Below the pieces are notes generated by a model. That model was not told where the DNA came from and made no database searches. It worked only from the letters and a program-made list of their open reading frames with translations. Source: Rebecca billardiae RCC1528 (taxonomy: Eukaryota; Protista; Haptophyta). Taken from it: a stretch of 64,000 bases of DNA. A program made the translations under genes and the position numbers. This document shows positions 19,108-45,010 of this stretch, piece by piece. How positions within the stretch are numbered: position 1 is the stretch's first letter; every line of letters begins with the position of its first letter. The DNA is taken from the NCBI GenBank assembly GCA_965240325.2, contig OZ251244.1:248001-312000 (forward strand), given 5' to 3'.

Positions 19108-22100
19108 ATGCCGTGGCGGCGGCCCGGCCTCGTGATCATCTCCGACCCCGGGCCCGATCCAGATGACGCCAAGTGCGCTGCGCGCGCGCGCGCGAGACGC
19201 GCCCCCGCGCGACGCAGCTTGCCTGCCGCCGCGCGCTGTGTCTGTGAGACACACCCACGCACACACACACCAGCTCGATGGCTCATCCCCGGCGCGCACA
19301 CACTCGCGCGCGCGCGCGGTCTGGTGGGTGCAGGTGCATCCTCGTCGCGGCAGTGCTGCACACGCTGCGTCGGCTGCGCCTCCTCTGCGTCGTGTGCAAC
19401 GGCGGCGGGCAGGCGCGCGAGCGCGCGACGCTCGCGCGCTGCCTTCTCGACCACCTCGGCGCGCTGGACGTGCCGGTGGGCGTGGGCTCGCAGGGGTTGG
19501 CGTGCGCGGGCCAGCCGCACGAGTACGCGCTCGACGGTTTCGACGCGGTCGAGCCCGCGCGCCTGCACCACGGCGCCGACCTGCTGCTGCGCGTGCTGCG
19601 CGCCGCGCGCGGCCGCTCGGTGGACGTGCTGTGTATCTCGTCGCTGCGAGATCTGGCGGACGCGTGCGCGGGGCACGCGGGGCTGGTGGTGGCGAAGGTG
19701 CGCCGGGTGGCGGTGCAGGGCGGGCTCACGCCCGACCCGAGCGCGAGGCACGGCTACGTGCCCGACACCAGCGTGAACAACGGTGCTGCTGCGCTGCGCG
19801 TGCGCCGCGCGCGGCGCCGGTCTCGTGCGCGCCGCGCGCACCGCGGCGCTGAGCGGTTCCCCGCGCGCGCGCGCTCGCCGCGGCGTGCAGGCTTCGACAC
19901 GGACGCGGCGGCGGCGGTGTACGCCTTCTGCTTCGAGCGCCGGCTGCCGCTCACCGTCGTCTCGCGGCACGCGGTGCCGATGCTGCCGATGCAGCTCGCC
20001 AAGTCGTTCGCGCAGCGCACCGAGTGCCCGGTGATGCGCTACCTGGCGGACGCGCAGTTCCTCGGGCTGGAGGGGCTGTGGCAGAAGCTGTGCGCGGGCA
20101 AGCTGCCCGCGCGCTGCACCAAGCAGTGGTACTTCGAGACCTTCTGCGGCGTGGGCGCGGAGGAGTTCCGCGCGAGCGGCTACGCGCAGCTCGACGCGTC
20201 CGCCGCCATCGTGCAGCACCTCAACGGGTGCGTGGGGTTAGGGGTAGGGGTAGGGTTAGGGGTAGGGGTAGGGTGCGGGTGCGTCCCATCGTGCAGCACC
20301 TCAACGGGTGCGTGAGGGTTAGGGGTAGGGTTAGGGGTAGGGTTAGCCAGCCGGTGCGCGGGCCGTGCGCGCGCACGCCCACACGCAGCCCCCCACCCCC
20401 CTCCGCCTGTGCGCGCGCGCATGCGCCCGCCCCGCCCCGCAGGTACATCAAGCCGTACGACGTGTGCGCGCTGATGGCGCTGCTGCCAGGCCGGCTTGCG
20501 GAGGTGGTGCGCGCGTGCGGGCAGCAGGCGGTGGTGGGCGGCGCGGCGCACACTCTGCTGCTCGAGGGCGCGCGCCCGCTCCCCACGGAGGTCGTGCTCG
20601 AGCTGCTGCGAGACACCTACCACGAAGTGGTGCTGCTCACGCGCGCCCGCGCGCAGGGGCGCGGGGCGGGCGCCGCGGCCGGCGGCGGCGGCGCGCGCGG
20701 CCGCGCCCGAGGCCGCGAGCCCGCGGCGCGCGGCCGCGGCCGCGGCGCCGGCGCGGGCGGCAAGGGCGCGTCGCCGCCGCCGCCGGACAGCAACATGCTC
20801 GAGCTCGGCCTTGGGCGCGGGCCCTCGAAGCAGCTCGGGCGCTGCGCGTCCAAGCGGAGCGCGGCGCACGCGGCCGCGGCCGCGGCCTCGCTCTCCGCGC
20901 CGCGCGCGCGCCCGCCGCCGGTCACGCGGCTGCCCGCGCGGCCCGGCGCGCGCGGCGGCGCCGCCGACGGCGCGGCGCCGCCGGCCGCCGTGTCAAGCCG
21001 TGCGCCGCTCAGCGCGCTCGCCACCGAGGCCGCGATCGGCTCGGCGCTGCACCACGCCGTCGAGCGCCAGCGCTTCATCACGCGCGCGACGCTGGGCGCG
21101 GGCGTGTGCCTCGGCCTCGGCTGCGCCGTCGCGTACGTAGCCGACGGCGCGGTGTCCGCGGGCTCGGCGGGACAGTCGGCGGCGGCCATGGTGGACTCCG
21201 ATGGCGCGTACGCGCTGCGCGCCTTCCTCTACTACGTGGGGGTTGTGGTGGGGGTGCTGCTGTGCGGCCTCTCGGCGCAGCCCGTGGCAGCGCACCGCGC
21301 GCGGCTGCGCGCGCTGCTGCTGCTCTTCGCCCTCGGCGCCGCGGCGGTCGGCGCCGTCCACTTCCTGCCCGACCTGCTGCGCGCGGCGCGTACGGCGCCC
21401 GAGGCCTACGACGGCCCCCACGTGCGCGCGGACGCGCTCGCGCGCGGCGGGCGCGCGCGCCGGCCGTACTGGCGCTCCGTCTGGCTGTGGCACCGGCTGT
21501 ACCGCACGCTCGAGTACACGATCCTCGCCGGCCTCGGCGGCGCGGCGCTGCGCCGCCACTGGGCGTCCGCGCGCGGGATGGTGCGCGCGTTCTGGCGGCT
21601 GAGCGGTCTGTGGCTCGTGGCGCAGACGGCGGGTGACGCACACACGCTGTACCGCGCGCTCGAGGCGCGCCTCGACGCGCACGGCGCGCAGCAGCCGTGG
21701 CAGCGCCCGGCGCACGTGGCGATGCTCTGCTGCACCGCGCTCGCCGCCGCTCTCGTGCTCGGGCCCGGCTTCAGGCGGCGCGCGCACGCGCTCATCGCGC
21801 GCGCGCACGCGGCGGGCGGCGCGCGCGCCGCCGCGGACGGCGCGGGCGGCCTGCTGCCGCTGGTGGCTGGGCTGGTCGGCTTTGGCGCGGCGCAGCGCGG
21901 CGCGACCGAGCGCCTCCCCGCCGAGCTCACCGCCGAGGCCGCGCGCTCCTTCGCGCCGGAGGAGCTCGACGATATCTCGCTCGACGAGATCGCGTTCGCC
22001 TGCCCGCTGCGGCACCCGCCGGGCGCGGCGCCGGACGGCGGCGACGGCGGCGGCGGCGGGGGCAGCGAGCGCGCACGCGGCCGTGGCGCGTGCTTGGGCG

Positions 22101-22907
22101 CGAGCCCTCACAGCGCCGCCGCCGCCGGCAGCGGCAGCGGTGGCGGCGGCGGCGCGGTGGCTGCGCGCGGCTCGGCCGTGCGCACCGAGCGCGCGCGCGG
22201 CGCGGCAGAGGCGGCCGGCGCCGCACCGACCCCAACCCTAACCCTAACCCTAACCCTACCGCACCCGCAATTCAACAGACGCGCCGCCGCCTCGCCCTCC
22301 GCGCCGCCTGGCCGCGGGCACGGGACGCCCGCTGCCGCCGCGTGGGGCGGCGCGCGCGGCAGCGCGGACGCCCGGGCCTCGGCCGCCGCCGCCGGCTCGC
22401 CGCCGCACGCGCCCGCCCCCGCCTCCCTCGCTGTGCCGTGCGCCGGCAGCCCGCCGGGCGCGGCCGCTCCGAGCTCACCGCTCGCGTTGGCCGGCAGGCG
22501 GTGCAGCAGGCTCTCCGCCCGGGCGTCGACGGTGGGCTGCTACGATGACGGCGCGGCGCGGCTCGCCGCCGCCTCGCCGCACGCCGGCCGGCTCACCGAC
22601 CGCCAGCTGCGCCGCGCGGTGGAGCCGGCGTCCTCCGCGGCCGCCTCGCCCGCGCGGCCGCGCGCCGCGGCGGCCGCGTCGCCCGCGCGGCCGCGCGCCG
22701 CGGCGGCCGCGCCGCTCGCTGCGGCGGCGGCGGCCGCCGCCGCCACCGCCGAGGCGGGCGACGACGGCGGCGCCGGCGCGGCGCGCGAGGAGTGGCCCGC
22801 GCGCCCGGCCGCGGAGGCGGAGAGCGCGCCGCCCGGCGCGCAGCCGAGCGCGCCGCCGGCCGCCGCGCCCGGCGGCGGCGGCGGCGCGGCCGCGCAGCGG
22901 CGGACCT

Positions 22908-24917: not shown

Positions 24918-27900
24918 GGGCGGCGGCGTGTACGGCGCGCTGGTGCGCCACCCGGACTCGGTGCTCGCGCTCACGGCGAAGGAGATCCACGGCGGCTTCT
25001 GCGCCCCCGTCGACGTCGCGGGCCGCCGGCACACCAGCGACATTGTCGCCTACTACGTGCGTGCGCGCTAGCCCTAACCCTAACCCTAACCCTAACCCTA
25101 ACCCTAACCCTAACCCTAACCACGCCGGTGGCAGGGGCACACACCGCGCCGCGCCGGCGCGGCCTCACCGCCGCGCCCTCCGCCCCGCCCCAACACGCCA
25201 CAGGTGCGCACCGCGCGCGACCGGTACGGCGACGCCGTCCCCACCATCGAGTACTTTGACGAGATCGGGCTGCGCGACTTTCTGTACCACCGCGAGACGG
25301 GCGACAACGGGATCCTCCAGCGCTTCGTCGACCCGCACGGCGAGTGCAACAACCTGATACGCGTGCAGTGGACGGCGCACGTGTGCGCGATCCACCTCTG
25401 CAAGAATCGGTGTGTGCGCGCGCGCGCGCGCGGCCGCCGAGGGGGCCGCGCAGCGCGTTGGGCGGGCGTGGCGGCCGGGCGGCCGCGCCCCGCCGGCCGC
25501 GCCCCGCTGCGCGCGCGCGGCAGCCAGCGCGCTGGCGCGCGGGCGCGGCGCGGCGCCCTGTGCTGACGCCCCCCCTGCCCACGCCGCGTCCGCGCCCGCG
25601 CCGTGCAGCCACCCCTACCGCGAGCGGCGGTACGCACCGCGGCAGCGGGCGTCAACCTTCGACGCGGAGGAGGTGCGCGCGCGCGCGTGCGCGTGCGCGC
25701 GCGGGGATGGCCGCGCCGCGCCCTCGCCGCCCGCCCACCCGCGCCCCCACCCGCGCCCCGCGTCACAGGTGCACAAGTGGCAGCACTCGATGGAGCGCGG
25801 GCCCACGCGCCGCCGCATCAAGCTGGCCACGGAGCGCGTGCTCGCCGCGGTGAAAGGGCAGCTGCTCTCGCGCTACGAGCTCGTCTCCGCGGTCTTCTAC
25901 TTCAAGCTGGCGGCGGGGCGGCGCTCCGAGGATGTGGCGATGGCGCAGGCGGGCGTGGCGCTCGGCGGGGGCGGCGGCGGCGGCGCGGGCGGCGCGGGCG
26001 GTGGCGGCGGCGGTGGCCTGGACAACAAGCGCACGCTGCCCGGCCGGCTGCAGTCCGAGCTGCTGCTGCTGTGGTGCCAGGTGCGGGCGTGCGCGGCCGT
26101 GCGTGTTTTGCGGTGCTGGGCGCGCGGCTGTGGCGCCGCCGCGCGCCGAGCGAGCGAGCGCGCGCGTGCTGCGCGCACGCACACACACCCTGCGGCGCTG
26201 CGCTGCCTGGCACAGCGCACCAACCCTAACCCTAACCCTAACCCTAACCCCCACGCGCGCGCAGGGCATCAAGCTGCGCAACCGGCTCTCGGACCGCGTC
26301 AACATCCCGGTGCCGCCCACCGGCCTGGTGGCCGTGGACCCCTCCTTCTCGCGCCAGTCGGTCGTGCCCTCCTCGTATTTCCGGTGCCCCGTCTGCGGCA
26401 CCGTGGCGGACTCCGCGTCGCAGTACGGCGTGCCGGCCAAGCTGGTACTGCAGCACTTGCGGCAGATGGGCGCGGAGGACCGGCCGACGCTGCGCCGGCT
26501 GCTGCTCTCGCTCGGCGGCACGCCCAAGGAGGGTGCGTGTGCCCGTTTCCCCCTGAGACCCCTTCCCGCCGGGCGGCCGCGCAGCGGCCCAGCCGCCACC
26601 GCCCGCCGCCGCGCGCGCGCGCGCTCACGCGCGCGCGCCCTGTGCGCGTGCGCGCGCACACTACGCACGCGCGCGCACGCCACGCGCCGCGCACAGGCAT
26701 GCGGCGCGTGGCCAAGCGGCAGCTGCCCACGTACGTGCTCGAGCAGATCTTTGCCAGCGCGCAGGAGGGCGGGGGCGCGGGCGGCGGGGGCAGCGGGGGC
26801 GGCGCGGAGGGCGCGGGCGGCGCGGCGGCGGGCGCGGGCGCGGGCGGCGCGGACGGCGCGGACGGGCTCGGCGGCGGCGGCGCAGAGGATGAGGTGGCGG
26901 CGAGCTGGGCGGTGCGCGCGCTGCCTGCCGCCCAAGCGAGCGCGCCGCCCCGATGCGTGGCGCGCGCACGCGCGGCGGGGGCGGCAGCCAGCGCGTCACG
27001 GCACCACCCTGAGCCACCGCGCGCCGCCGCCCCCGCCGCCCCCGCCTCCGCCCCCGCCGCCTCCGCCGCCTCCGCCGCCGCCTCCGCGCCGCGCGCACCA
27101 CTTGGCCTCCCCCGGACTCGCGGCCTCTCCCGGACTCTCGCCGCCCGCCCCGGACTGTTGGGCCGCGTGCTGCGCAGGTGGACGCGTTCGACGAGCTCGC
27201 GCACCTGGCGGGCGGCGCGCGGCAGCGCGCGGCGGGCGCGCCGGCCTCGCCCGGCGCGGGCGCGGAGGGCCGTGCGCCCGGCGCCGCCGCGGCCGGCCGC
27301 GCGCGCGGCCGCGCCGGCGGCGCCGGCGGCGCGGGCGCGCGCGGCGCGCGCGGCGGCGGCGGCGCGCGCTCCGCCGGCGGCAGCTTTGGCGCTGGCGGCG
27401 GCGGCGCCGGGCTGGGCGGCGCGGGGCCGCAGACGCAAACGCTCATCAACCCTTTTACTGGCAAGTCCATCAACATTGGCGCGCACGGCGGCGGCGCGGG
27501 CGCGGACGGCGGCGCGGGGCGCTCGGCTGCGCTCGGCCTCGGCGGCGGCGGCGGCGGCGCGCTCGGCGGCGCGCGCGCGCTCTCGGCGAGCCACAGCCGC
27601 GGCTCTGCCGGCGGCGGCGGCGGCGGCGCGCTCGGCCCGCCGAGCCCGGCGCGGCCCGCGGGCGCGGCGGCGGGCGGCGGCGGCGCGCTCGCACATCGCG
27701 TGGCCACCGCGCCCGCCGGCGCGCGGCGCGGCGCGGCGCCGTGGCACGCGCCGGCCGACGGCGCGGCCGACGGTTACGCCGACCGTTACGCCGACCGTTA
27801 CTCGGAGGACTGGTCGGGCTCGAGCTCGGAGTCGGGCGACGAGCGCCCCGGCTCGGCGCAGCCCAGCGACGCGGGCTCCTGGCGCAGCCGCCACCCCTAC

Positions 27901-31573: not shown

Positions 31574-31745
31574 GTGGACCTTTGTGGATGACTGCAGGCT
31601 CCTGGTTACTGATATCGCAGCAGAAGCGGCAAAATCAGCTGACTCACACATCACGGCGTCCATCATACGGCATCGTCAGCAGTCACGGTCGTCATCGTCG
31701 GCCCGGGACGGCGCGCCGAGAAAGTCTCGGACGGGCTACGTCCGT

Positions 31746-34506
31746 ATAACTCACTCGGTAGACCCACATGAGAGTAGATTGAGGTGGGGGCCGCGTTGAT
31801 AAACGCGTGAGGTGACTAGGTCACACCCCCGAAGCCGTCCAGGATGCGACGCCGACCAGGAAGGACTCGCCGATGCATTCGAGCAACTACGCCGACAGAA
31901 GCCGATGACCGCCTAGACGCCGAAGAGGAAGTACTCGATGGAGCACGTAGACCGCAGGCGCTGGCAGCCGACGCCCCCCCCCAACGCAAGTTTGGGCAGA
32001 GCGCGGCGCCGCAGGAGGCAGAGGCCTCGAGGGCCTCCACCCCCCCGACACCGCGCGCACCCAAGGCCATGCCCACCCAGCAACCAGCAGGGTGGGAGGG
32101 CAGGGAGAAACAACTCCCAGAGGAGGAGCAGCCACCAGCGCAGCGGTGACCAGAGCAGCCACGCCGGCCGCCGCGCCGCGGGTGCAGCCAGCGAGCGCGG
32201 CCGCACCCAGACGCGCATGGCTTGCCAAGCTGCTGAGCCAATCCAGGCCCGCGCCCAATCCGGGCCTGGCTCGGCTTGACGACCGGAAAACCTCCAGGCA
32301 GCCGGACCCTGGCTGCCAGCCCGCCCTCATGAGGGCTACCGGTGAGTTATACCCGCATAACCGAGCGGTTATACAACCATAACTCACTCGGTAGACCCAC
32401 ATGAGAGTAGATTGAGGTGGGGGCCGCGTTGATAAACGCGTGAGGTGACTAGGTCACACCCCCGAAGCCGTCCAGGATGCGACGCCGACCAGGAAGGACT
32501 CGCCGATGCATTCGAGCAACTACGCCGACAGAAGCCGATGACCGCCTAGACGCCGAAGAGGAAGTACTCGATGGAGCACGTAGACCGCAGGCGCTGGCAG
32601 CCGACGCCCCCCCCCAACGCAAGTTTGGGCAGAGCGCGGCGCCGCAGGAGGCAGAGGCCTCGAGGGCCTCCACCCAGAAGGAGGTGTGGAATGCCACACC
32701 CCGCAGGGGTGGTGGCCGGGGGCCCGAAGAGGCCGAGGCCGCCGAAGGGGTAGCGCGAGGACCGAAGGCGGCAGAGGCCCAGAGGGGCTCCCCGCAGGGT
32801 TGTATGAGTAAGGACGATCCAGACGGCATGAGACAGTGGGCACGAAAACATGCGCGGCGGCGGCGGCGCAGGCGGGAAGCAGGCGCGAGACACGCACGCG
32901 TAGCGTCAGATAAGGTAGCAGGTCGCATCCCACACACAGCAGTGCACGGCAGACTGCAGAGGAGGCGGCAGAGAAGGAGAGAGCAGCACCCACCCGCCAG
33001 GCGATGAAGGCAAGCGAGACTGCGAAGCGTGAGAAGATTGCAGACGGGGACGCCTGGGAGCGGTTCCCAGGCGCCCCCATCGAAAGCAGAGCATGAGAAG
33101 ATTGCAGACGGGGACGCCTCGAAGCGGTTCCGAGGCGCCCCCATTGAAAGCAGAGCATGAGAAGATTGCAGACGGGGACGCCTCGAAGCGGTTCCGAGGC
33201 GCCCCCATCGAAAGCAGAGCATGAGAAGATAGATTGCAGATGGGGACGCCTCGAAGCGGCTCCGAGGCGCCCCCATCGAAAGCAGATAGAGCATGAGAAG
33301 ATTGCAGACGGGGACGCCTCGAAGCGGCTCCGAGGCGCCCCCATCGAAAGCAGAGAGCAAGCAGGGCAGGTGCACGAGTGGAGAGAGCGAGGGCTGAGGG
33401 CGGCCTACCGCCGACGCACACGCACCTGGAAGAAACAACTCCCAGAGGAGGAGCAGCCACCAGCGCAGCGGTGACCAGAGCAGCCACGCCGGCCGCCGCG
33501 CCGCGGGTGCAGCCAGCGAGCGCGGCCGCACCCAGACGCGCATGGCTTGCCAAGCTGCTGACGGCATGAGACAGTGGGCACGAAGACATGCGCGGCGGCG
33601 GCGGCGCAGGCGGGAAGCAGGCGCGAGACACGCACGCGTAGCGTCAGATAAGGTAGCAGGTCGCATCCCACACACAGCAGTGCACGGCAGACTGCAGAGG
33701 AGGCGGCAGAGAAGGAGAGAGCAGCACCCACCCGCCAGGCGATGAAGGCAAGCGAGACTGCGAAGCGTGAGAAGATTGCAGACGGGGACGCCTGGGAGCG
33801 GTTCCCAGGCGCCCCCATCGAAAGCAGAGCATGAGAAGATTGCAGACGGGGACGCCTGGGAGTGGTTCCCAGGCGCCCCCATCGAAAGCAGAGCATGAGA
33901 AGATTGCAGACGGGGACGCCTCGAAGCGGTTCCGAGGCGCCCCCATCGAAAGCAGAGCATGAGAAGATTGCAGACGGGGACGCCTCGAAGCGGTTCCGAG
34001 GCGCCCCCATCGAAAGCAGAGCATGAGAAGATAGATTGCAGACGGGGACGCCTCGAAGCGGCTCCGAGGCGCCCCCATCGAAAGCAGATAGAGCATGAGA
34101 AGATTGCAGACGGGGACGCCTCGAAGCGGCTCCGAGGCGCCCCCATCGAAAGCAGAGAGCAAGCAGGGCAGGTGCACGAGTGGAGAGAGCGAGGGCTGAG
34201 GGCGGCCTACCGCCGACGCACACGCACCTGGAAGAAACAACTCCCAGAGGAGGAGCAGCCACCAGCGCAGCGGTGACCAGAGCAGCCACGCCGGCCGCCG
34301 CGCCGCGGGTGCAGCCAGCGAGCGCGGCCGCACCCAGACGCGCATCGCTCGCCAAGCTGCTGAGCCAATCCAGGCCCGCGCCCAATCCGGGCCTGGCTCG
34401 GCTTGACGACCGGAAAACCTCCAGGCAGCCGGACCCTGGCTGCCAGCCCGCCCTCATGAGGGCTACCGGTGAGTTATACCCGCATAACCGAGCGGTTATA
34501 CAACCA
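31746..34506. mobile_element. Two head-to-tail copies (31746-32378, 32379-34506) of a non-autonomous Helentron/HINE-like element
   Basis: Both copies start ataactcactcggtag. Both end with the subterminal inverted copy ctaccggtgagttata, the hairpin ATAACCG-AG-CGGTTAT and acaacc. No TSD is evident. The longer copy has internal tandem repeats and an internal duplication (32822 vs 33560). Confidence 0.6.
33031..34156 (-). repeat. 64-bp hairpin-forming tandem repeat, 5 copies (33031-33355) + 6 copies (33769-34156)
   Basis: Unit GAGAAGATTGCAGACGGGGACGCCTCGAAGCGGTTCCGAGGCGCCCCCATCGAAAGCAGAGCAT. Confidence 0.9.
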
Positions 34507-38267: not shown

Positions 38268-40730
38268 TAGGGGGTCCATCTGATTAAATCGAGTTTTGAT
38301 TTCTTTTCTTTTCCTTTTCAGAACTTGTTCGGCGTGTTTTCGCGATCGGCAGATTCCAAATCCGCGCTCGGCTCGGCCCGGCGCGGGAGCGGAGCTCTGA
38401 ACGGGGTCGGCAAGGCTGATGGCCCTCGTCGACGGCCGTCCGCTCGCCATTGGGCGCGCCCACATCGGCGCAGGCGCCTCGCCGAGCGACTCGGTGGACA
38501 CGGACACGTAGCCACGGTTCGTGTGGACCGGGCTCTCGCTGGGAGTCGCTGGCCAAACGACGCTCGTGCTTCATCATTTGAATCTGCGTGCTCGACGTGT
38601 GCTGCTCGCGACCAAGGAGCGCGTCCTGGGAGCACGTGCAGGAGAGCAATACGGAGACGAACATGCGCAATATGGTGGGATGGGCATCGACAACGACTGG
38701 ACACTGTCTCCTTCCCCACCCGTCGCTGCCATCTCGCCCTCGGACGTGCCCGCGACGCCTCTGCCGCAAGGGCCAGCTGCCGCCGACCAACTTGCGGACC
38801 GCTGTGCCGGGCATGACGAGGTCCAGGGCGCGGCAGATGATGATGCACGCGTGCCCATGGGTGTGTGCGACCCGCCCGAGGTCCCTGCCGGCACCGCCGA
38901 GGGGCTCGCCTCCTCCGCGGACGGCCTCGACTGTGAGCAACCGTGCAGGCCCGAGCTACGGCCTGACGTCAACGTCAGCGCGCAGCAGCTCGAGGAGACG
39001 GCGGTGGCGGCGCGCGCCATCCACGTGCTACAGCCTTCGACCAGCTGGCGCGTGGCCGGCACTCGCCCGCGGTACGCATCGGTGCTCGACTTCATGCTCC
39101 TCGACCTCCTCCGCACGCTCGTGGTCTCGTGGAGCTCATGCTTGAGAACTTGAAGAAGCACAAGCCGTTGGTCAGAGTGTTCACCCCTGCGTGCGCCCAG
39201 ACCGCGCGCGACGGTCGGACGAAGAAGCCCAAGGCGCTCACGCTCGTCTGCGTGGATGCGCTCGGCATCTCGTTGCGCCACGACTCGCCGCGGCTCGAGG
39301 TGATCGGCATCTGGCTGATGACCGTGCACAGGTGGTGGAAGGGCAAGCACGAGGACATGGAGCGCATCCTGAGCCGGAAGCAGGGCGCGTCGGCGGCGGA
39401 GAGGAAGGCGGAGCTGGATGTCGACGACACGTCGCTGGGCGCCGGCGACGACAGCTGCCCCTTCCGCGACCTCTACTCGCCCCCCGACGCCAGCGCGCCG
39501 CGCGCGTCCGCAGCAGGCCGCGTGCAGGTGCAGCTGCACGAGCAGCGCGTGACTCCTGCTGAGCACGCGATCATCTTGGAGCAGCAGGTGCGCCTGACGG
39601 AGCAGCAGGTGGAGCTGAACTCGTCGCGCAAGGCGATCGCGCGCGCCGTCGCCGACGCTGCGCGCGCCAGCTTGCGCGCCAACGCAACCGAGCGCAGCGC
39701 GCGCGGGGGCACAGATCGAGCTGCGGCCGAGCGGGCTGCCATGGCTGCCGACTGCGCCGAGTTCGAGCGCGAGAGGAGAGCGCCGGAGCTCGAGGGCGAG
39801 CGCGCGGCGAAGCGCGCGCAGTCCGCCGCAGTACTGGTGGACCGGTGACGCCCTCGCGTGGGCTAGGGTACGACGAACGGCGACGACGCCGGTGACACAG
39901 AGCACGGGCACGGAAGTCGCCGAACGGACCGCGGCAAGCTCGGCGGCGGCGACTGCTAGTCTGCGCACGCAAGCCTCGATGGCGGAGGACTCTCTCACGA
40001 CTATGGGGATGGTGGCATGCTCAGAGGTGGGCTTGGTAGTGTGCTTCGGCACGCAGCCCGCCGCCCGCATCAGGTCCGTCCGGGCCTGCTGCGGCACGGT
40101 TCGACTTCGAGTGGCATGAGCCCGCGGTCTCCGCGCGGCGGCGCGGCCTATTCGGATGACCCGGCACGAATAGTGAACAAGGTACCCCCATATTGACAGC
40201 ACCCTGAATATATATTTAAAACGCACCCGCTTTATATGATAAACGGGTAGACATGCGCATATATACGGGTACGTGTCTCTAATTAAATGGGTAACATGCT
40301 CGATCTTGGAGTAGTTTTTCCTCGCCCTCTACGCGCACTCATCGTGCCTTCTAAAAATCAGCAATTATTGGGATTACCGCAAGCTCCGAGCGTCTCGAGC
40401 CCTGCTAAAAGCTCACCGCGCACGACAGGACGGACGCCACCGCGAGGATCACATGCCTCGCGATCTCATCAGCTCTCAAGCCTCTGAACCTGGCCCTTAT
40501 TTCCGGCGCTCTTGCGCCGGGCCAAAACAGCGATCGAGCTCCGATCGCTCCTGGGCTCGGGGCGGTAGTATCATCGCCGTGCCGACTTACCCAGATTTTG
40601 CCGCGATCAGCCAATCGGCGATCGCACCGTCCGTCCTGTTGCCGCTCAACTTTGTACCACTGCTTCTCGTCCATGTCCGGTGCTGCTCACCTGCTTTCCT
40701 TGGACAAATCCAGTGTACCAGCATGACGCC

Positions 40731-40950
40731 CGCGCTGCTCCGCGCTGCTCCGCGCTGCTCCGCGCTGCTCCGCGCTGCTCCGCGCTGCTCCGCGCTGCTC
40801 CGCGCTGCTCCGCGCTGCTCCGCGCTGCTCCGCGCTGCTCCGCGCTGCTCCGCGCTGCTCCGCGCTGCTCCGCGCTGCTCCGCGCTGCTCCGCGCTGCTC
40901 CGCGCTGCTCCGCGCTGCTCCGCGCTGCTCCGCGCTGCTCCGCGCTGCTC
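40731..40950 (+). repeat. (CGCGCTGCTC)22 minisatellite in the LTR
   Basis: Direct count. Confidence 0.95.
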
Positions 40951-42658
40951 CGCGCGCTCCGCGCTGCTCCGCGCTGCTCCGCGCTGCTCCGCGCTGCTCC
41001 GCGCGCTCCGCGCTGCTCCGCGCGCCCCGCGCTGCTCCGCGCTCCCGCGCCGCTGCGCCCGCGCTGCTCCGCGCCCGCGCCGCTGCGCCCGCGCTGCTCC
41101 GCGCTCGCGCGTCTGCTGCCGCGCGCGTCCTGGACGCGCGCGCTGCCAGCCACTGCTCCGCAGCAGCTGCTGCCGCCGGCCCGCCTGATGCGGCGCCAGC
41201 CCTGACACCCCAGCGGCAACGCCATCTGCTGAGATGCGTGCCCCAGACTGTGCCAGTTCATCCGCACTGCTGCTCTGCAGCAGCTGCGCCGCCGGTCTGC
41301 CTGCTGCAGCACCGGCCCTGACTCACCGCCGGCGACGCCATCTGCTGAGATGCGCGCCCCTGGCCTCGTCAGCTCAACACCCCCCCTCGACAGCCATAGC
41401 CGCGAGCGAGTAGCACCGCTCATCGCGCGCGCGTCGGGTGTCGCACACCATGATGGCGTCGACGTGCCACTCAAACGTAGCAGCGTCGTCCGTCGCCTTC
41501 GTCATGATGTCGGCGTGGTACATTGACCTCACGCCACGTACTCCGCCTCCGTCGAGCTCAGCTGGGCCATAACCTGCAGCCCGCTGCTGTGCCACGACAC
41601 CGGCGATCCATTGTAGAAGACAATGATGCAGCCACCCGTCGACCTCCACCCGGATTCCCCTGGGTTGTTAGACCAAACAGAGTCACCCAAAGTGAGCAAG
41701 TCGTCGAGCTCGTCAATCTCCGCGCGCTGGACCAACGCCTTGTCCGCGTCGGTCAGCCTCGCGCGCGCCGCTGCCTCTGGCAGCCGTATCCGCGTGCTCG
41801 CGTTCGTGCCGAATCGCTCGAGCCCGCCATCGATCGCCTCTGCGACCCGCGGCAACCCGCCCGCATCTGCGCGGCGGTCCCGCGCCAAAGTTGCGCCGGT
41901 GGTATCTCATACCACCAGTGCGACTGCGCCCATGGCGCGCCCGCACCGCCCCGATCGCCGGCCTGCGGCATCGGCGGCTGTGCGCCCGTGCGCCCGCGCT
42001 GCTGCGCCCGCGCTGACCCGCGCCCGCGCTGCTGCGCCCGCGCACCTGTGCTACGCGGCGGCCCGCCAGCATCTGCTGCGGCCCCGCGCCGGGATTCCGT
42101 CGGCGGGATCCGACCCTGCCGACCCAGGCTGTGTCGCTGACGCGCCTGCTCCGCCACGCCCGCCCTGCGGCGTCGGCGTCGACGGCTGTGCGCACGCGCT
42201 GCTGCGCCCGCGCGCTGTTCCGCGCCTGCGCTGCCGCGCCCGTGCGCTGTTCCGCACCTGCGCTGCCGCGCCTGCGCGCTCCGCGCCCGCGCTGCTGCGC
42301 TCGCGCGCTGTTCCGCGCCCGCGCTGCTGCGCCCGCGCGCTGTTCCGCGCCCGCGCTGCCGCGCCCGCGCGCTGTTCCGCGTCCGCGCTGCCGCGCTCGC
42401 GCGCCGACGCCGACGCATCTGCGTCGCCGTCGTTCCTGACGTCGAACTCCGTCGCGTCGTCGTCACCGGCGTCGGCCGGCGGCTCGCCGCCGTCGCCGTC
42501 ATCGTCCTGCGCCGCGCGGCGGCCCGCCAGCATCTGCTGCGGCCCCGCGCCGTGATTCCGCCGGCGGTATCTGACCCTGCCGACCCGGCTGCGTCATCGA
42601 CGCGCCTGTCCCGCCACGCCCGCCCTGCGGCGTCGGCGTCGACGGCTGTGCGCCCGCA

Positions 42659-43110
42659 CTGCTGCACCCGCGCTGTCCCGCGTCCACGCTGCTGCGCCCG
42701 CGCCCCGACGTTGACGCATCTGCGTCGTCGTCGTACCCGACGTCGAACTCTGTCGCGTCGTCATTCCCGGCGTCGGCTGGCTGCTCGCCGCCGTCGCCGT
42801 CATCCGCGCCCGCGCTGCTGCACCCGCGCTGTCCCGCGTCCACGCTGCTGCGCCCGCGCCCCGACGTTGACGCATCTGCGTCGTCGTCGTACCCGACGTC
42901 GAACTCTGTCGCGTCGTCATTCCCGGCGTCGGCTGGCTGCTCGCCGCCGTCGCCGTCATCCGCGCCCGCGCTGCTGCACCCGCGCTGTCCCGCGTCCACG
43001 CTGCTGCGCCCGCGCCCCGACGTTGACGCATCTGCGTCGTCGTCGTACCCGACGTCGAACTCTGTCGCGTCGTCATTCCCGGCGTCGGCTGGCTGCTCGC
43101 CGCCGTCGCC
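42659..43110. repeat. 156-bp tandem repeat x3 inside the Copia element
   Basis: Units start at 42661, 42817 and 42973. Confidence 0.85.
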
Positions 43111-45010
43111 GTCCTCGTCCTCACCGTCGGCGTCACCGCCGACCGGACGATGTCCGCCGCTTACCGCGGCGCCGTCACCATCACCCACGTACGCGCCACC
43201 GTCAGGTGCGCCCAGCGACGAGTGCCCCCCCTCGACCAGGTCGGTCTCGTCGATGCGTACGTCACGCAAGTGAAGAGACGTCCGTCGTCTACACGACATA
43301 CGTACCAGAGTACGTTGAAGCCACGGAGCTGCTCCGCGCGCGGCGCGCGCTGATCGCCGCCGCCGCTGCCTCCTCCGCCCTCGCAGCCAGTCGGTATCTC
43401 TCCGCCGTCTTGGCCGCCGCCACGATCCCCGCCGTCGCCACCGCCGCCTGAGCCAGGCGATGAGCTTCGTGCGTGGACGTGTGGGTGCCGCCGCCACCAC
43501 CGGGCGTACGACCACCTGGTTCGGTGCGCCCAGCGCCGCCGAGCCACTGCCGCGCGCTGCTGCGCGCACACACGCCGCACCGGCGTCCTGCGCCGTGCGT
43601 GTGCTTCCGACGCCTCAGCGTCGGGTCCCCACCTGCCGCCGAATGATCTCGGCCCGCAGCATGGAATCGAGCTGAACCTCCCGGCGTGGGCCGAGTGCCA
43701 TGCACTGCCCCGCCGTCACCCCGCACTCGCGCCTTGCGCGCGCGCGGATACCGCGACTCAAAGATCGCGCCAGCGCCGCCGTCTCGGCGGCACTGCCAGC
43801 TGCGCCTCGCGTCAGCTGCAGACGTAGTCTCGGCACCGCTGCGCCGCCCCGTCATGATCCCGCGCTCGCGCCTCGCGCGCGCGCGATTCCCGCGACTCAA
43901 CAGTCGCGCCAGCGCCGCCATCTCGGTGGCACTGCCAGCTGCGCCTCGCGTCAGCTGCCGGCGTAGGACCAGTGCCAAGCACTGCCCGCCGCCGTAACGG
44001 CGCTCGTGTCGCCAGATTCCACCCGGACGATTCCGATAGATCCGGGTGTGCCAACCGCCGGACCTGTGTCCAGTCCGGTCGTGCCAGCCGTGCCAGCCGG
44101 ACCGCAAAACCCAGTCCAGCTGCCAGCCGCCATCCGGTGCCCTAGACCACCGGACAGGTTGATGAGCCAGCCCCTCCGAGTAGATCGCCGAGCCCGCCGT
44201 CGCCGCCGTCAGCTGCCGTGCAGCCACCCGGCGCTCGGGGTGCGTGCTCGCGCCGATCGTGCCAGTAGCGCTGCTCAGTCATCCGCCGCTGCACGCAGTA
44301 GTTCTCCTGCACCAGCTGCATCCGCTCAGATCCAATCGTGAGCTTCCGGGAGGCTGTCGTGTCGGGCTCATCACCGACAGGTACTGTTCCTCCCAATCGA
44401 CGCGAAGTTCCGCGTCCGGGCCATGCGCGGAGATGATGCCGATGATCCCTGGCATCGTAGCGCCATGCCCCATCGAGAGCGTCGCCAGTTTGCCCGCGCT
44501 CTCGGCCAGGAACCTCTGCTGCATTCCATGCGACGCCAGAGTTCCTCGTTCCGCCCATCCTGCAACCGCGGCCGCTCGTGCCCATCAGCCCAATCGATGA
44601 GAAAGGACAGTGCGGACAACTCCCTCCCTGGGGTTGCTGCGCGCATATTGGGATTACCGCAAGCTCCGAGCGTCTCGAGCCCTGCTAAAAGCTCACCGCG
44701 CACGACAGGACGGACGCCACCGCGAGGATCACATGCCTCGCGATCTCATCAGCTCTCAAGCCTCTGAACCTGGCCCTTATTTCCGGCGCTCTTGCGCCGG
44801 GCCAAAACAGCGATCGAGCTCCGATCGCTCCTGGGCTCGGGGCGGTAGTATCATCGCCGTGCCGACTTACCCAGATTTTGCCGCGATCAGCCAATCGGCG
44901 ATCGCACCGTCCGTCCTGTTGCCGCTCAACTTTGTACCACTGCTTCTCGTCCATGTCCGGTGCTGCTCACCTGCTTTCCTTGGACAAATCCAGTGTACCA
45001 GCATGACGCC

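Follow-up and report, generated by a model that had tools for sequence, protein, structure and literature searches.

A tandem array of 64-bp palindromic units in Rebecca billardiae is a likely passenger of a young Helitron2-like non-autonomous transposon

Our data place an array of 64-bp palindromic units from the genome of Rebecca billardiae RCC1528 inside a dispersed, non-coding element of 2.76 kb. These units are probably the central tandem repeat, likely carried as a passenger, of a young non-autonomous rolling-circle transposon of the Helitron2/Helentron type (HINE-like). The element and its termini, its copy number, the pattern of its insertion sites and its standard five-unit array can all be read directly in the genome, and comparison of the end sequences supports their assignment to the Helitron2/Helentron (HINE-like) type. 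We analysed a 64,000-nucleotide stretch of contig OZ251244.1 (positions 248,001 to 312,000; hereafter the window), for which an original prediction had proposed a hairpin selected in single-stranded minus-sense RNA or ssDNA and carried by a rolling-circle-like element.

Results

TRF detected two arrays of the 64-bp unit (Table 1), one with 5.0 copies (90% matches) and one with 6.0 copies (93% matches), separated by 408 bp. A repeat search placed the 11 in-register copies at start-to-start spacings of 64, 64, 68, 68, 474, 64, 64, 64, 68 and 68 bp. The original prediction was right about the eleven units but described them as one array at 33031-34156, slightly inside the true limits of 33026-34157; they form blocks of five and six because the surrounding part of the element is tandemly duplicated. 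This internal duplication (740/804 bp) is private to this locus and also accounts for the greater length of the long unit here than in other copies, and another locus (L028) carries an independent 396-bp duplication. Across the genome the standard array has five units (31 of 33 arrays), and a second subfamily of the element also carries the array.

Each unit is 64-68 bp long and is dominated by a 39-nt near-perfect palindrome. Aligned on the minus strand, the units read CTGCTTTC-GATGGGGGCGCCTCGGA-ACCGC-TTCGAGGCGTCCCCGTC-TGCAATCTTCTCATGCT, and the unit alignment bears out the predicted minus-strand hairpin of 17 consecutive pairs, with G.U wobbles at pairs 11-45, 16-40 and 24-32; on the plus strand these three positions hold A.C mismatches. 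The 25-nt linkers between hairpins are as invariant as the hairpins themselves. An earlier suggestion that the units are guide-like precursors fails on these identical spacers, and we rejected a CRISPR-like repeat-spacer array, which needs variable ones. A G-quadruplex reading was rejected on anatomy.

Table 1. Coordinates of the element and its parts in the window.
Feature	Position	Strand	Basis or remark
Whole composite non-autonomous Helitron2-like element, short and long unit head to tail	31746..34506	+	Dispersed 99-100% identical copies on many contigs
Short unit, 634 bp: module A (31746-32042), 60-bp link, module B (32103-32379), which has a 3' end of its own	31746..32379	+	Repeat families D3, D4
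5' asymmetric terminal inverted repeat (ATIR), ATAACTCAC-T-CGGTAG	31746..31761	+	Begins at the element's first base
Long unit, array between modules A and B	32380..34506	+	2127 bp here; ~1326 bp in other copies
Internal tandem duplication, first copy	32822..33561	+	Self-BLAST; L001-L010 have one copy
Array 1, hairpin units a1-a5 (five, 64/68 bp)	33026..33355	-	TRF, repeat search, unit alignment
Internal tandem duplication, second copy, one more 64-bp unit	33560..34363	+	96-99% identical to first
Array 2, units b1-b6 (six): array 1 duplicated, with one unit added	33764..34157	-	TRF, repeat search, unit alignment
3' ATIR, CTACCGGTGAGTTATA, 28 bp from the 3' end	34463..34478	+	Sequence comparison of ends
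3' terminal palindrome ATAACCG-AG-CGGTTAT, then ACAACCA to end	34484..34499	+	Read from sequence

The short and long units of the element meet at ...ACAACCA/TAACTCAC... (32379/32380). Homology between loci stops at 34506 everywhere and at 31745/6 in full-length copies, so that the 3' end is constant and the 5' end variably truncated; truncation points of the short unit in other loci are 31984, 32000, 32003, 32060 and 32068. The two ATIRs are reverse complements save for a 1-nt bulge. An alternative hairpin (GTTAT/ATAAC) overlaps the 3' palindrome, where DNA folding gives an alternative pairing that is thermodynamically weak (z -1.5). Folding of the 5' end yields only a weak hairpin, with a 4-bp CTCA/TGAG stem and a 2-bp inner stem. 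No Pfam domain was found in any ORF of the element on either strand; long ORFs occur on both strands because the T-poor plus strand makes stop codons rare on both.

The family comprises about 55 composite copies in a GC-rich, 72-Mb genome. Genome-wide, 107 sites match the 43-nt 3' end exactly (0 for the reversed control), and the 64-bp unit has at least 200 matches on more than 25 contigs. Successive 3' ends mostly lie ~1325-1390 bp apart, and loci range from singletons and dimers to short-short-long trimers and long-long tandems. Orphan 3' ends without a nearby array match are far fewer than array-bearing composites. Fetched copies are ~99-100% identical, with 38 variant events over 977 non-array sites, and the family is very young and probably recently active. 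The mutation spectrum of the copies, polarised to look for a bias between strands, is sparse (six G>A events versus four C>T). We found no match in exact-pattern scans of metagenome contigs for relatives, and no relatives of this genome in the genome collection.

We compared the element with the defining features of Helitron2 given by Bao and Jurka (2013; PMC3627910). Its 5' ATIR lies 0-1 bp from the 5' end, within the 0-2 bp typical of Helitron2, and its 3' ATIR, within the typical ~20-30 bp of the other end, stands directly upstream of a hairpin, here short and weak. No direct repeats were present in the flanks of 17-18 junctions, and a T stands before the element in 11 of 16 cases and after it in 12 of 18, against a genomic T content of ~16%; in the examined junctions, this agrees with Helitron2 insertion at T/TT without target duplication. 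The 5' truncations with a constant 3' end and the tandem units follow the same pattern. A short central tandem array between terminal modules, frequent but not obligatory in HINEs, is likewise present, and such arrays, mostly of five or fewer monomers, have been described in non-autonomous Helentrons (PMC7492417; PMC4067079). Together, these features uphold the proposal of a rolling-circle-like carrier. The weak 5' hairpin counts against the Helitron2 assignment, which expects a 5' hairpin involving the ATIR. Canonical Helitron1 was rejected: it requires 5'-TC, CTRR-3' and A/T insertion, whereas this element begins with ATAAC, ends with ACAACCA and has T/T flanks.

The genome encodes RepHel proteins with an RGS-type motif (RGS-L-H-V-H). 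Following the suggestion that an autonomous partner might carry the same array, we examined five PF14214 (Helitron_like_N) loci, 20 kb each, by BLAST down to word size 7, fuzzy motif scans and a covariance model. Among these five loci and 13 PIF1 hits, we found no RepHel partner sharing the termini, and the covariance model detected no hairpin resembling the 64-bp unit in the five RepHel loci. Neither the five loci nor the PIF1 hits fell inside any element that bears this 3' end; set against the positions of all such ends, one PIF1 hit lay 4 kb from an orphan end, outside the element. That these loci and hits yielded no partner with shared termini or array counts against the Helitron2 explanation.

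RNA folding of the hairpins gave -32.3 and -38.4 kcal/mol on the minus strand (z -5.6 and -5.9; 0 of 200 shuffles as good), and -23.8 and -30.0 kcal/mol on the plus strand (z -2.8 and -3.5). Every segment of the element, not the array alone, folds more stably on the minus strand, a consequence of an element-wide plus-strand composition of 24.5% A against 9.6% T. The apparent minus-strand specificity of the hairpin, G.U on one strand and A.C on the other, is probably a by-product of this A-rich, T-poor composition. The extreme skew itself counts against our preferred explanation, a passenger array in a Helitron2-type element, which gives no origin for it. Deamination of ssDNA was rejected as its source, since it predicts a T-rich transferred strand and the presumed transferred (plus) strand is T-poor. 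Searched at the gathering score, Rfam returned no match in the whole window; an E-value scan of the element turned up only miRNA look-alikes below threshold that extend across adjacent units (21-33 bits versus cut-offs of 51-90), which we judged to be chance.

The sequence variants originally reported are all present at their reported positions: CCTGGGA/TCCCAGG in units a1, b1 and b2, a U.G to U-A change at 33241 in a4, and a broken terminal pair (G-C to A.C) in a2. Loop changes also occur (A26G, G29A). A check for covariation found two-sided change in one of the 17 pairs, representing a single event; this count was equalled in 364 of 500 shuffles, and the uncompensated form of the C-G to G-C swap persists in subfamily 2. 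With this one double change and no Rfam match at threshold, the data do not support a conserved structured RNA. The CCTGGGA/TCCCAGG variant has a right arm exactly complementary to its left and loses the neighbouring G.U simultaneously, and these three linked changes are the pattern expected from templated copying. Template switching is documented to create seemingly compensatory changes (Monttinen and Loytynoja, 2022; PMC8794818). As in that work, clustered changes bring the two arms into exact complementarity and selection is not needed, whereas here we infer the mechanism from the three linked changes and recurrent wobble repair.

Recent stem variants have no strand bias: about two to three speak for the minus strand (C17T and A35G stay paired on that strand alone), and two for the plus strand (G9A, found in 13 units, and T31C stay paired on that strand alone). 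Variants are no less common in the stem than elsewhere, and four to five of those in the stem disrupt pairing. Changes that keep the pair are somewhat commoner than expected (~7 of 11 stem variants versus the ~29% expected if transitions and transversions are equally frequent; rough, hand-counted binomial p ~0.02) because the 11-45 wobble is repaired recurrently. This excess could reflect selection for the hairpin instead of templated repair. With a single covariation event, no strand bias and an element-wide folding advantage, our data do not support selection of the hairpin in a minus-sense RNA or ssDNA; they match the scenario that the original prediction had set against it, in which covariation is not significant and arm-to-arm conversion produces the variants. 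Apparent strand-specific compensatory evolution can arise here from one event plus compositional skew.

Discussion

We propose that what moves is a head-to-tail composite, made up of a 634-bp short unit and a ~1.3-kb long unit with five hairpin units. The array may have arisen, and may still change, by slippage or unequal exchange; the copy in the window would have gained one unit and the 740-bp duplication, and the duplication in L028 would be independent. The 39-nt palindromes would stay complementary through template switching or templated repair between arms, processes intrinsic to palindromic DNA, and not through selection on an RNA. The array would most likely be passenger DNA, copied when RepHel supplied in trans mobilises the ends. 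The constancy of five units and the array's presence in the second subfamily count against a passenger.

These two observations speak for the array as a cis-acting DNA module, a reading we consider unlikely: five phased palindromic sites, putatively bound as duplex or cruciform by a host factor or by accessory DNA-binding domains of the transposase, would make recruitment more effective or control rolling-circle transposition. The palindromic sites are repeated at a fixed phase (64 bp corresponds to about six helical turns), recurrent changes restore complementarity at pair 11-45, and array-bearing composites far exceed orphan 3' ends. However, the five RepHel loci contain nothing unit-like, a family this young should show constant unit number and sequence even with no selection, and HINE central repeats vary freely between families (PMC7492417). 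We regard it as distinctly unlikely that selection maintains the array, whether it serves as a phased platform for binding or forms hairpins or cruciforms that act as a signal in rolling-circle transposition or its silencing; in that case wobble repair, constant unit number and strand skew would be functional signatures and not neutral palindrome dynamics. Quite improbable, in turn, is a minus-sense transcript or ssDNA that folds into tandem 17-bp hairpins and is processed or bound, as small-RNA precursors, decoys or replication signals, with selection acting on the strand. Wobbles that pair on the minus strand only, stable hairpins (-32 to -38 kcal/mol, z ~-5.7), one compensated swap, of which an uncompensated form survives in subfamily 2, and the minus-only pairing of C17T and A35G would fit such a molecule, but the covariation is one event, G9A and T31C pair on the plus strand only, the folding advantage is compositional and extends along the whole element, Rfam holds no family at threshold, and the array, with its identical linkers, is not guide-like. 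A 17-bp stem is also short for Dicer-type processing. Finally, Helitron transposition reportedly displaces the plus strand in the case of Helraiser, and by this analogy the single-stranded intermediate here would be the plus strand, carrying the A.C mismatches.

The identity of the host element can also be questioned. On the minus strand the composite is formally laid out like split direct repeats, A-x-B-A-...-B, resembling the A1-internal-B1-A2-B2 of DIRS/Ngaro-like retroelements; it also lacks target-site duplications, and none of the RepHel loci examined shares its ends. We nevertheless think it highly improbable that the host is a non-autonomous element of that kind, or of another non-Helitron class. 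The number of units ranges from 1 to 3, unlike the fixed architecture that a circular intermediate generates, truncation affects one end at many positions and leaves the other constant, the 15-nt asymmetric terminal inverted repeat and downstream palindrome stand in exact Helitron2 geometry, and insertion sites are T-flanked.

A Helitron2-type element has close architectural parallels. Chlamydomonas reinhardtii Helitron-1N1_CRe and -1N2_CRe (PMC3627910) share the 5'-terminal ATIR, its 3' counterpart located upstream of a hairpin and 20-30 bp short of the end, T-adjacent insertion without target duplication, 5' truncation and surplus 3' ends, and their unit of ~650 bp resembles the 634-bp short unit. 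The likeness drawn here is architectural; in our element the 5' hairpin is weak and the element is a short-plus-long composite with a five-unit palindromic minisatellite. HINE/DINE-1-like elements (Thomas et al, 2014, PMC4067079), including Pacific oyster Cg_HINE (Vojvoda Zeljko et al, 2020, PMC7492417), share two flanking modules, subterminal inverted repeats, a 3' palindrome, T-rich or TT targets and a short central array, mostly of five or fewer monomers, that the element spreads genome-wide. In contrast to the 140-180 bp monomers of Cg_HINE, those here are 64 bp and dominated by a near-perfect palindrome of 39 nt; the host is a unicellular eukaryote with a GC-rich genome and not an animal, and we saw no microsatellite module.

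The element is an ordinary new member of a known transposon type, and explaining its striking hairpin array as transposon cargo chiefly tidies annotation. We know of no biochemical study of Helitron2 elements; if the array does act in cis, it would offer a rare handle on Helitron2 recognition. Our analysis defines a young, probably recently active Helitron2-like non-autonomous family in a GC-rich eukaryote. With its nearly identical copies, truncated 5' ends and tandem units, this family is a reasonable natural system in which to study rolling-circle transposition in algae.

Array organization and hairpin structure

A repeat search of the window found eleven unit copies in one register. In a minus-strand alignment of these units, each consists of an 8-nt linker, a 17-nt left arm (GATGGGGGCGCCTCGGA), the 5-nt loop ACCGC, a 17-nt right arm (TTCGAGGCGTCCCCGTC), and a 17-21-nt linker. 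The arms pair at 17/17 positions on the minus strand, with G.U wobbles at pairs 11-45, 16-40, and 24-32 that are A.C mismatches on the plus strand, as the original prediction described. Every variant that it listed was also found: CCTGGGA/TCCCAGG arms in three of the eleven units, G45A at window position 33241, G9A in one unit, where it breaks the terminal pair, and changes at loop positions. The prediction of an eleven-unit array was right in unit number, but tandem duplication has divided the units into two blocks, the second larger by one unit. This internal duplication (740/804 bp) is private to the window copy and doubles the array; another copy, at locus L028, carries an independent duplication with other breakpoints. 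Because of these two independent events, the array region seems duplication-prone.

Predicted RNA folds reach -32.3 and -38.4 kcal/mol on the minus strand (z -5.6 and -5.9), versus -23.8 and -30.0 kcal/mol on the plus strand (z -2.8 and -3.5). With DNA parameters the gap shrinks, to -15.4 and -18.9 versus -13.4 and -16.1 kcal/mol. We found no matching Rfam family.

Coordinates of features in the window and at related loci of the same genome
Feature	Position	Remark
Module A, first copy	31746-32042	followed by a 60-bp link
Module B, first copy	32103-32379	
Module A, second copy	32380-32675	followed by ~1 kb of internal sequence containing the array
Array block 1	33026-33355	64-bp unit, 5 copies (TRF)
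Array block 2	33764-34157	same 64-bp unit, 6 copies (TRF)
Module B, terminal copy	34230-34506	
Internal duplication, window copy	32822-34363	32822-33561 repeated as 33560-34363
Duplication at L028	L028:1020-2449 (G000:C5:159923-162986)	~396 bp
Second long-unit subfamily	L005:88-1210, L027:9-974	
RepHel loci (L011-L025)	G000:C7:282420, C13:616682, C23:65118, C33:783174, C39:342498	open frames of 2600-3640 aa
Telomere-like arrays	20235-20346, 22229-22258, 25068-25121, 26222-26250	
Tandem-repeat regions	40730-41105, 41989-43113	10-bp repeat, 38 occurrences

The array belongs to a dispersed composite element

The 72-Mb genome (41 contigs) contains at least 200 unit matches, spread over more than 25 contigs. 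When the 7 kb around the array were compared by BLAST with ten fetched loci, a dispersed element emerged. It shares 99-100% identity with window 31745-34506 and consists of a 634-bp short unit and a ~1326-bp long unit joined head to tail. Its 43-nt 3' end is matched exactly at 107 genomic sites, versus none for a reversed control. These ends lie mostly in pairs 1325-1450 bp apart, and therefore correspond to about 55 composite copies, along with some trimers and long-long tandems; about a dozen of the 3' ends are orphans. No Pfam domain was found in any of the element's ORFs, and long ORFs occur on both strands because the plus strand is T-poor. Searching metagenome contigs by exact pattern returned nothing.

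In a second long-unit subfamily, a patch upstream of the array is replaced, spacing is 64 bp throughout, and 69 bp resembling a degenerate half unit follow the array; the B module of its L027 member is a ~10% diverged mosaic. These differences suggest that long-unit subfamilies exchange modules by recombination.

Elsewhere in the window (G+C 56-85%), very GC-rich sequence is interspersed with short telomere-like arrays (GGGTTA/CCCTAA and variants) in interstitial positions; together with the base composition, they mark the genome as eukaryotic. Further downstream, the 10-bp repeat CCGCGCTGCT occurs along with tandem repeats of higher order, nested at periods of 14, 16, 32, 156, and 457 bp, and GC and AT skew are strongly negative in this region.

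Termini and insertion sites resemble those of Helitron2

The element starts at its left terminus with ATAACTCAC-T-CGGTAG. The reverse complement of this sequence, CTACCGGTGAGTTATA, occupies 34463-34478, which leaves 28 bp to the right terminus; downstream of it come the palindrome ATAACCG-AG-CGGTTAT and a final ACAACCA. Helitron2 as defined by Bao and Jurka has the same terminal geometry and inserts beside T without target duplication (PMC3627910). Here, no target duplication was found at 17-18 junctions, and T directly precedes the element in 11/16 cases and directly follows it in 12/18. Truncation points at the 5' end differ by locus (31984, 32000, 32003, 32060, and 32068) and the 3' end is constant; Chlamydomonas Helitron2 families are likewise truncated at the 5' end and have an excess of 3' ends (PMC3627910). 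Tandem repetition of whole Helitrons is also known (PMC7492417). A weak point of the match is the 5' hairpin of Helitron2 type, which is only weakly present. The original prediction of a rolling-circle-like carrier was correct, the host element being best read as Helitron2/HINE-like.

The TC...CTRR signature of canonical Helitron1 is absent. Read on the minus strand, the A-x-B-A-...-B layout of this element could also fit a DIRS/Ngaro element, a reading disfavored by the truncations and by unit numbers that vary between copies.

Three copies (L001, L036, and L040) have a (TA)n microsatellite immediately next to them in the 3' flank, and many further flanks are locally AT-rich in this ~70% G+C genome, suggesting that insertion targets AT-rich islands.

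Candidate mobilizers

Five Helitron_like_N loci, all with very long open frames, are present in the genome. Their Rep motif reads EDQxRGSLHVH; according to Thomas et al., S at this position is diagnostic of the Helentron type (PMC4067079). Across 8.3 kb, the copies on C7, C13, and C33 share 99.8-99.9% identity. At its ends (TGACGCACAAC... / ...GCCGCTGCCTCAAC), the ~11.2-kb RepHel element is unlike the non-autonomous family. Neither the element's termini nor unit-like hairpins were found in the five loci, and no PIF1 match lay inside an element bearing the 43-nt 3' end; the autonomous, array-carrying partner suggested originally was therefore not found among them.

Strand asymmetry and hairpin variation

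The element's plus strand is 24.5% A, 31.2% C, 34.8% G, and 9.6% T, with the same trend in every module. Its AT skew of 0.44 is the window maximum (median 0.06), and an 11-kb autonomous Helitron of this genome lacks such a skew. Because the plus strand is A-rich and T-poor, the U- and G-rich minus strand forms the more stable predicted RNA fold in every segment of the element.

Predicted RNA folding energies (kcal/mol) by strand
Segment	Minus	Plus
Left flank, outside the element	-271	-273
Module A	-134	-105
Link and module B	-192	-164
5' part of long unit	-282	-267
Array	-193	-159
Post-array	-106	-90
Terminal module B	-181	-158

Under composition weighting, the probability that all three wobbles fall on the minus strand is roughly 0.3. 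Wobble direction is expected from composition and provides no evidence for a minus-sense single strand. The polymorphism spectrum among copies (six G>A events, four C>T) is too sparse to reveal an ongoing bias. In Helraiser, the nicked, displaced strand runs from the 5' end to the 3' hairpin; by analogy, the plus strand would be the displaced single strand of this Helitron2-like element.

We sampled 164 units from 33 arrays and 150 covariance-model matches, and counted covariation on the alignment of the latter (20 distinct sequences, 500 shuffles). Two-sided change occurred in 1/17 pairs, a level reached by 364/500 shuffles, so the compensatory covariation predicted originally comes down to a single event. 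This event, C-G to G-C at pair 22-34, is linked to T32C, which converts the adjacent G.U to G-C, and in the resulting variant the inner seven right-arm bases, TCCCAGG, exactly complement the left-arm CCTGGGA. Such a form would arise if one arm changed and arm-to-arm templated copying then made the other its exact complement; template switching is documented to yield apparently compensatory changes (PMC8794818). Unit 1 of the second subfamily has TCCCAGG opposite CCTCGGA, with a C.C mismatch, and may represent an evolutionary intermediate or a recombinant of neighboring units.

Recent stem changes are without strand bias: C17T (9 units) and A35G keep pairing on the minus strand only, and G9A (13 units) and T31C on the plus strand only. 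By hand count, stem variants (~12-13 events per 170 position-specific sites) are at least as dense as non-array variants (38/977), and four to five break a pair. Pair-preserving changes account for ~7/11, against an expectation of ~29% under equal rates of transition and transversion (binomial p ~0.02, a rough, hand-counted value). This excess arises because pair 11-45 was repeatedly converted from G.U to Watson-Crick (T11C two or three times, G45A twice), and is equal for either strand. It hints at constraint, and is as compatible with biased palindrome repair as with selection. With a single covariation event and no strand bias, strand-specific selection on the hairpin, proposed originally for a minus-sense RNA or ssDNA, is not supported. 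A cis-acting role of the array at the DNA level is conceivable, although we consider it improbable.

Non-autonomous Helentrons of the HINE/DINE-1 type have two terminal modules, subterminal inverted repeats, and a 3' palindrome, and a short tandem-repeat array often sits between the modules (PMC4067079; PMC7492417). In the oyster, most arrays contain no more than five monomers (PMC7492417), and 31/33 arrays of the present family have five units. Less usual here is the short, 64-bp monomer, which is mostly one palindrome. The best explanation is a young, non-autonomous Helitron2/HINE-like transposon whose central tandem repeat is the hairpin array.
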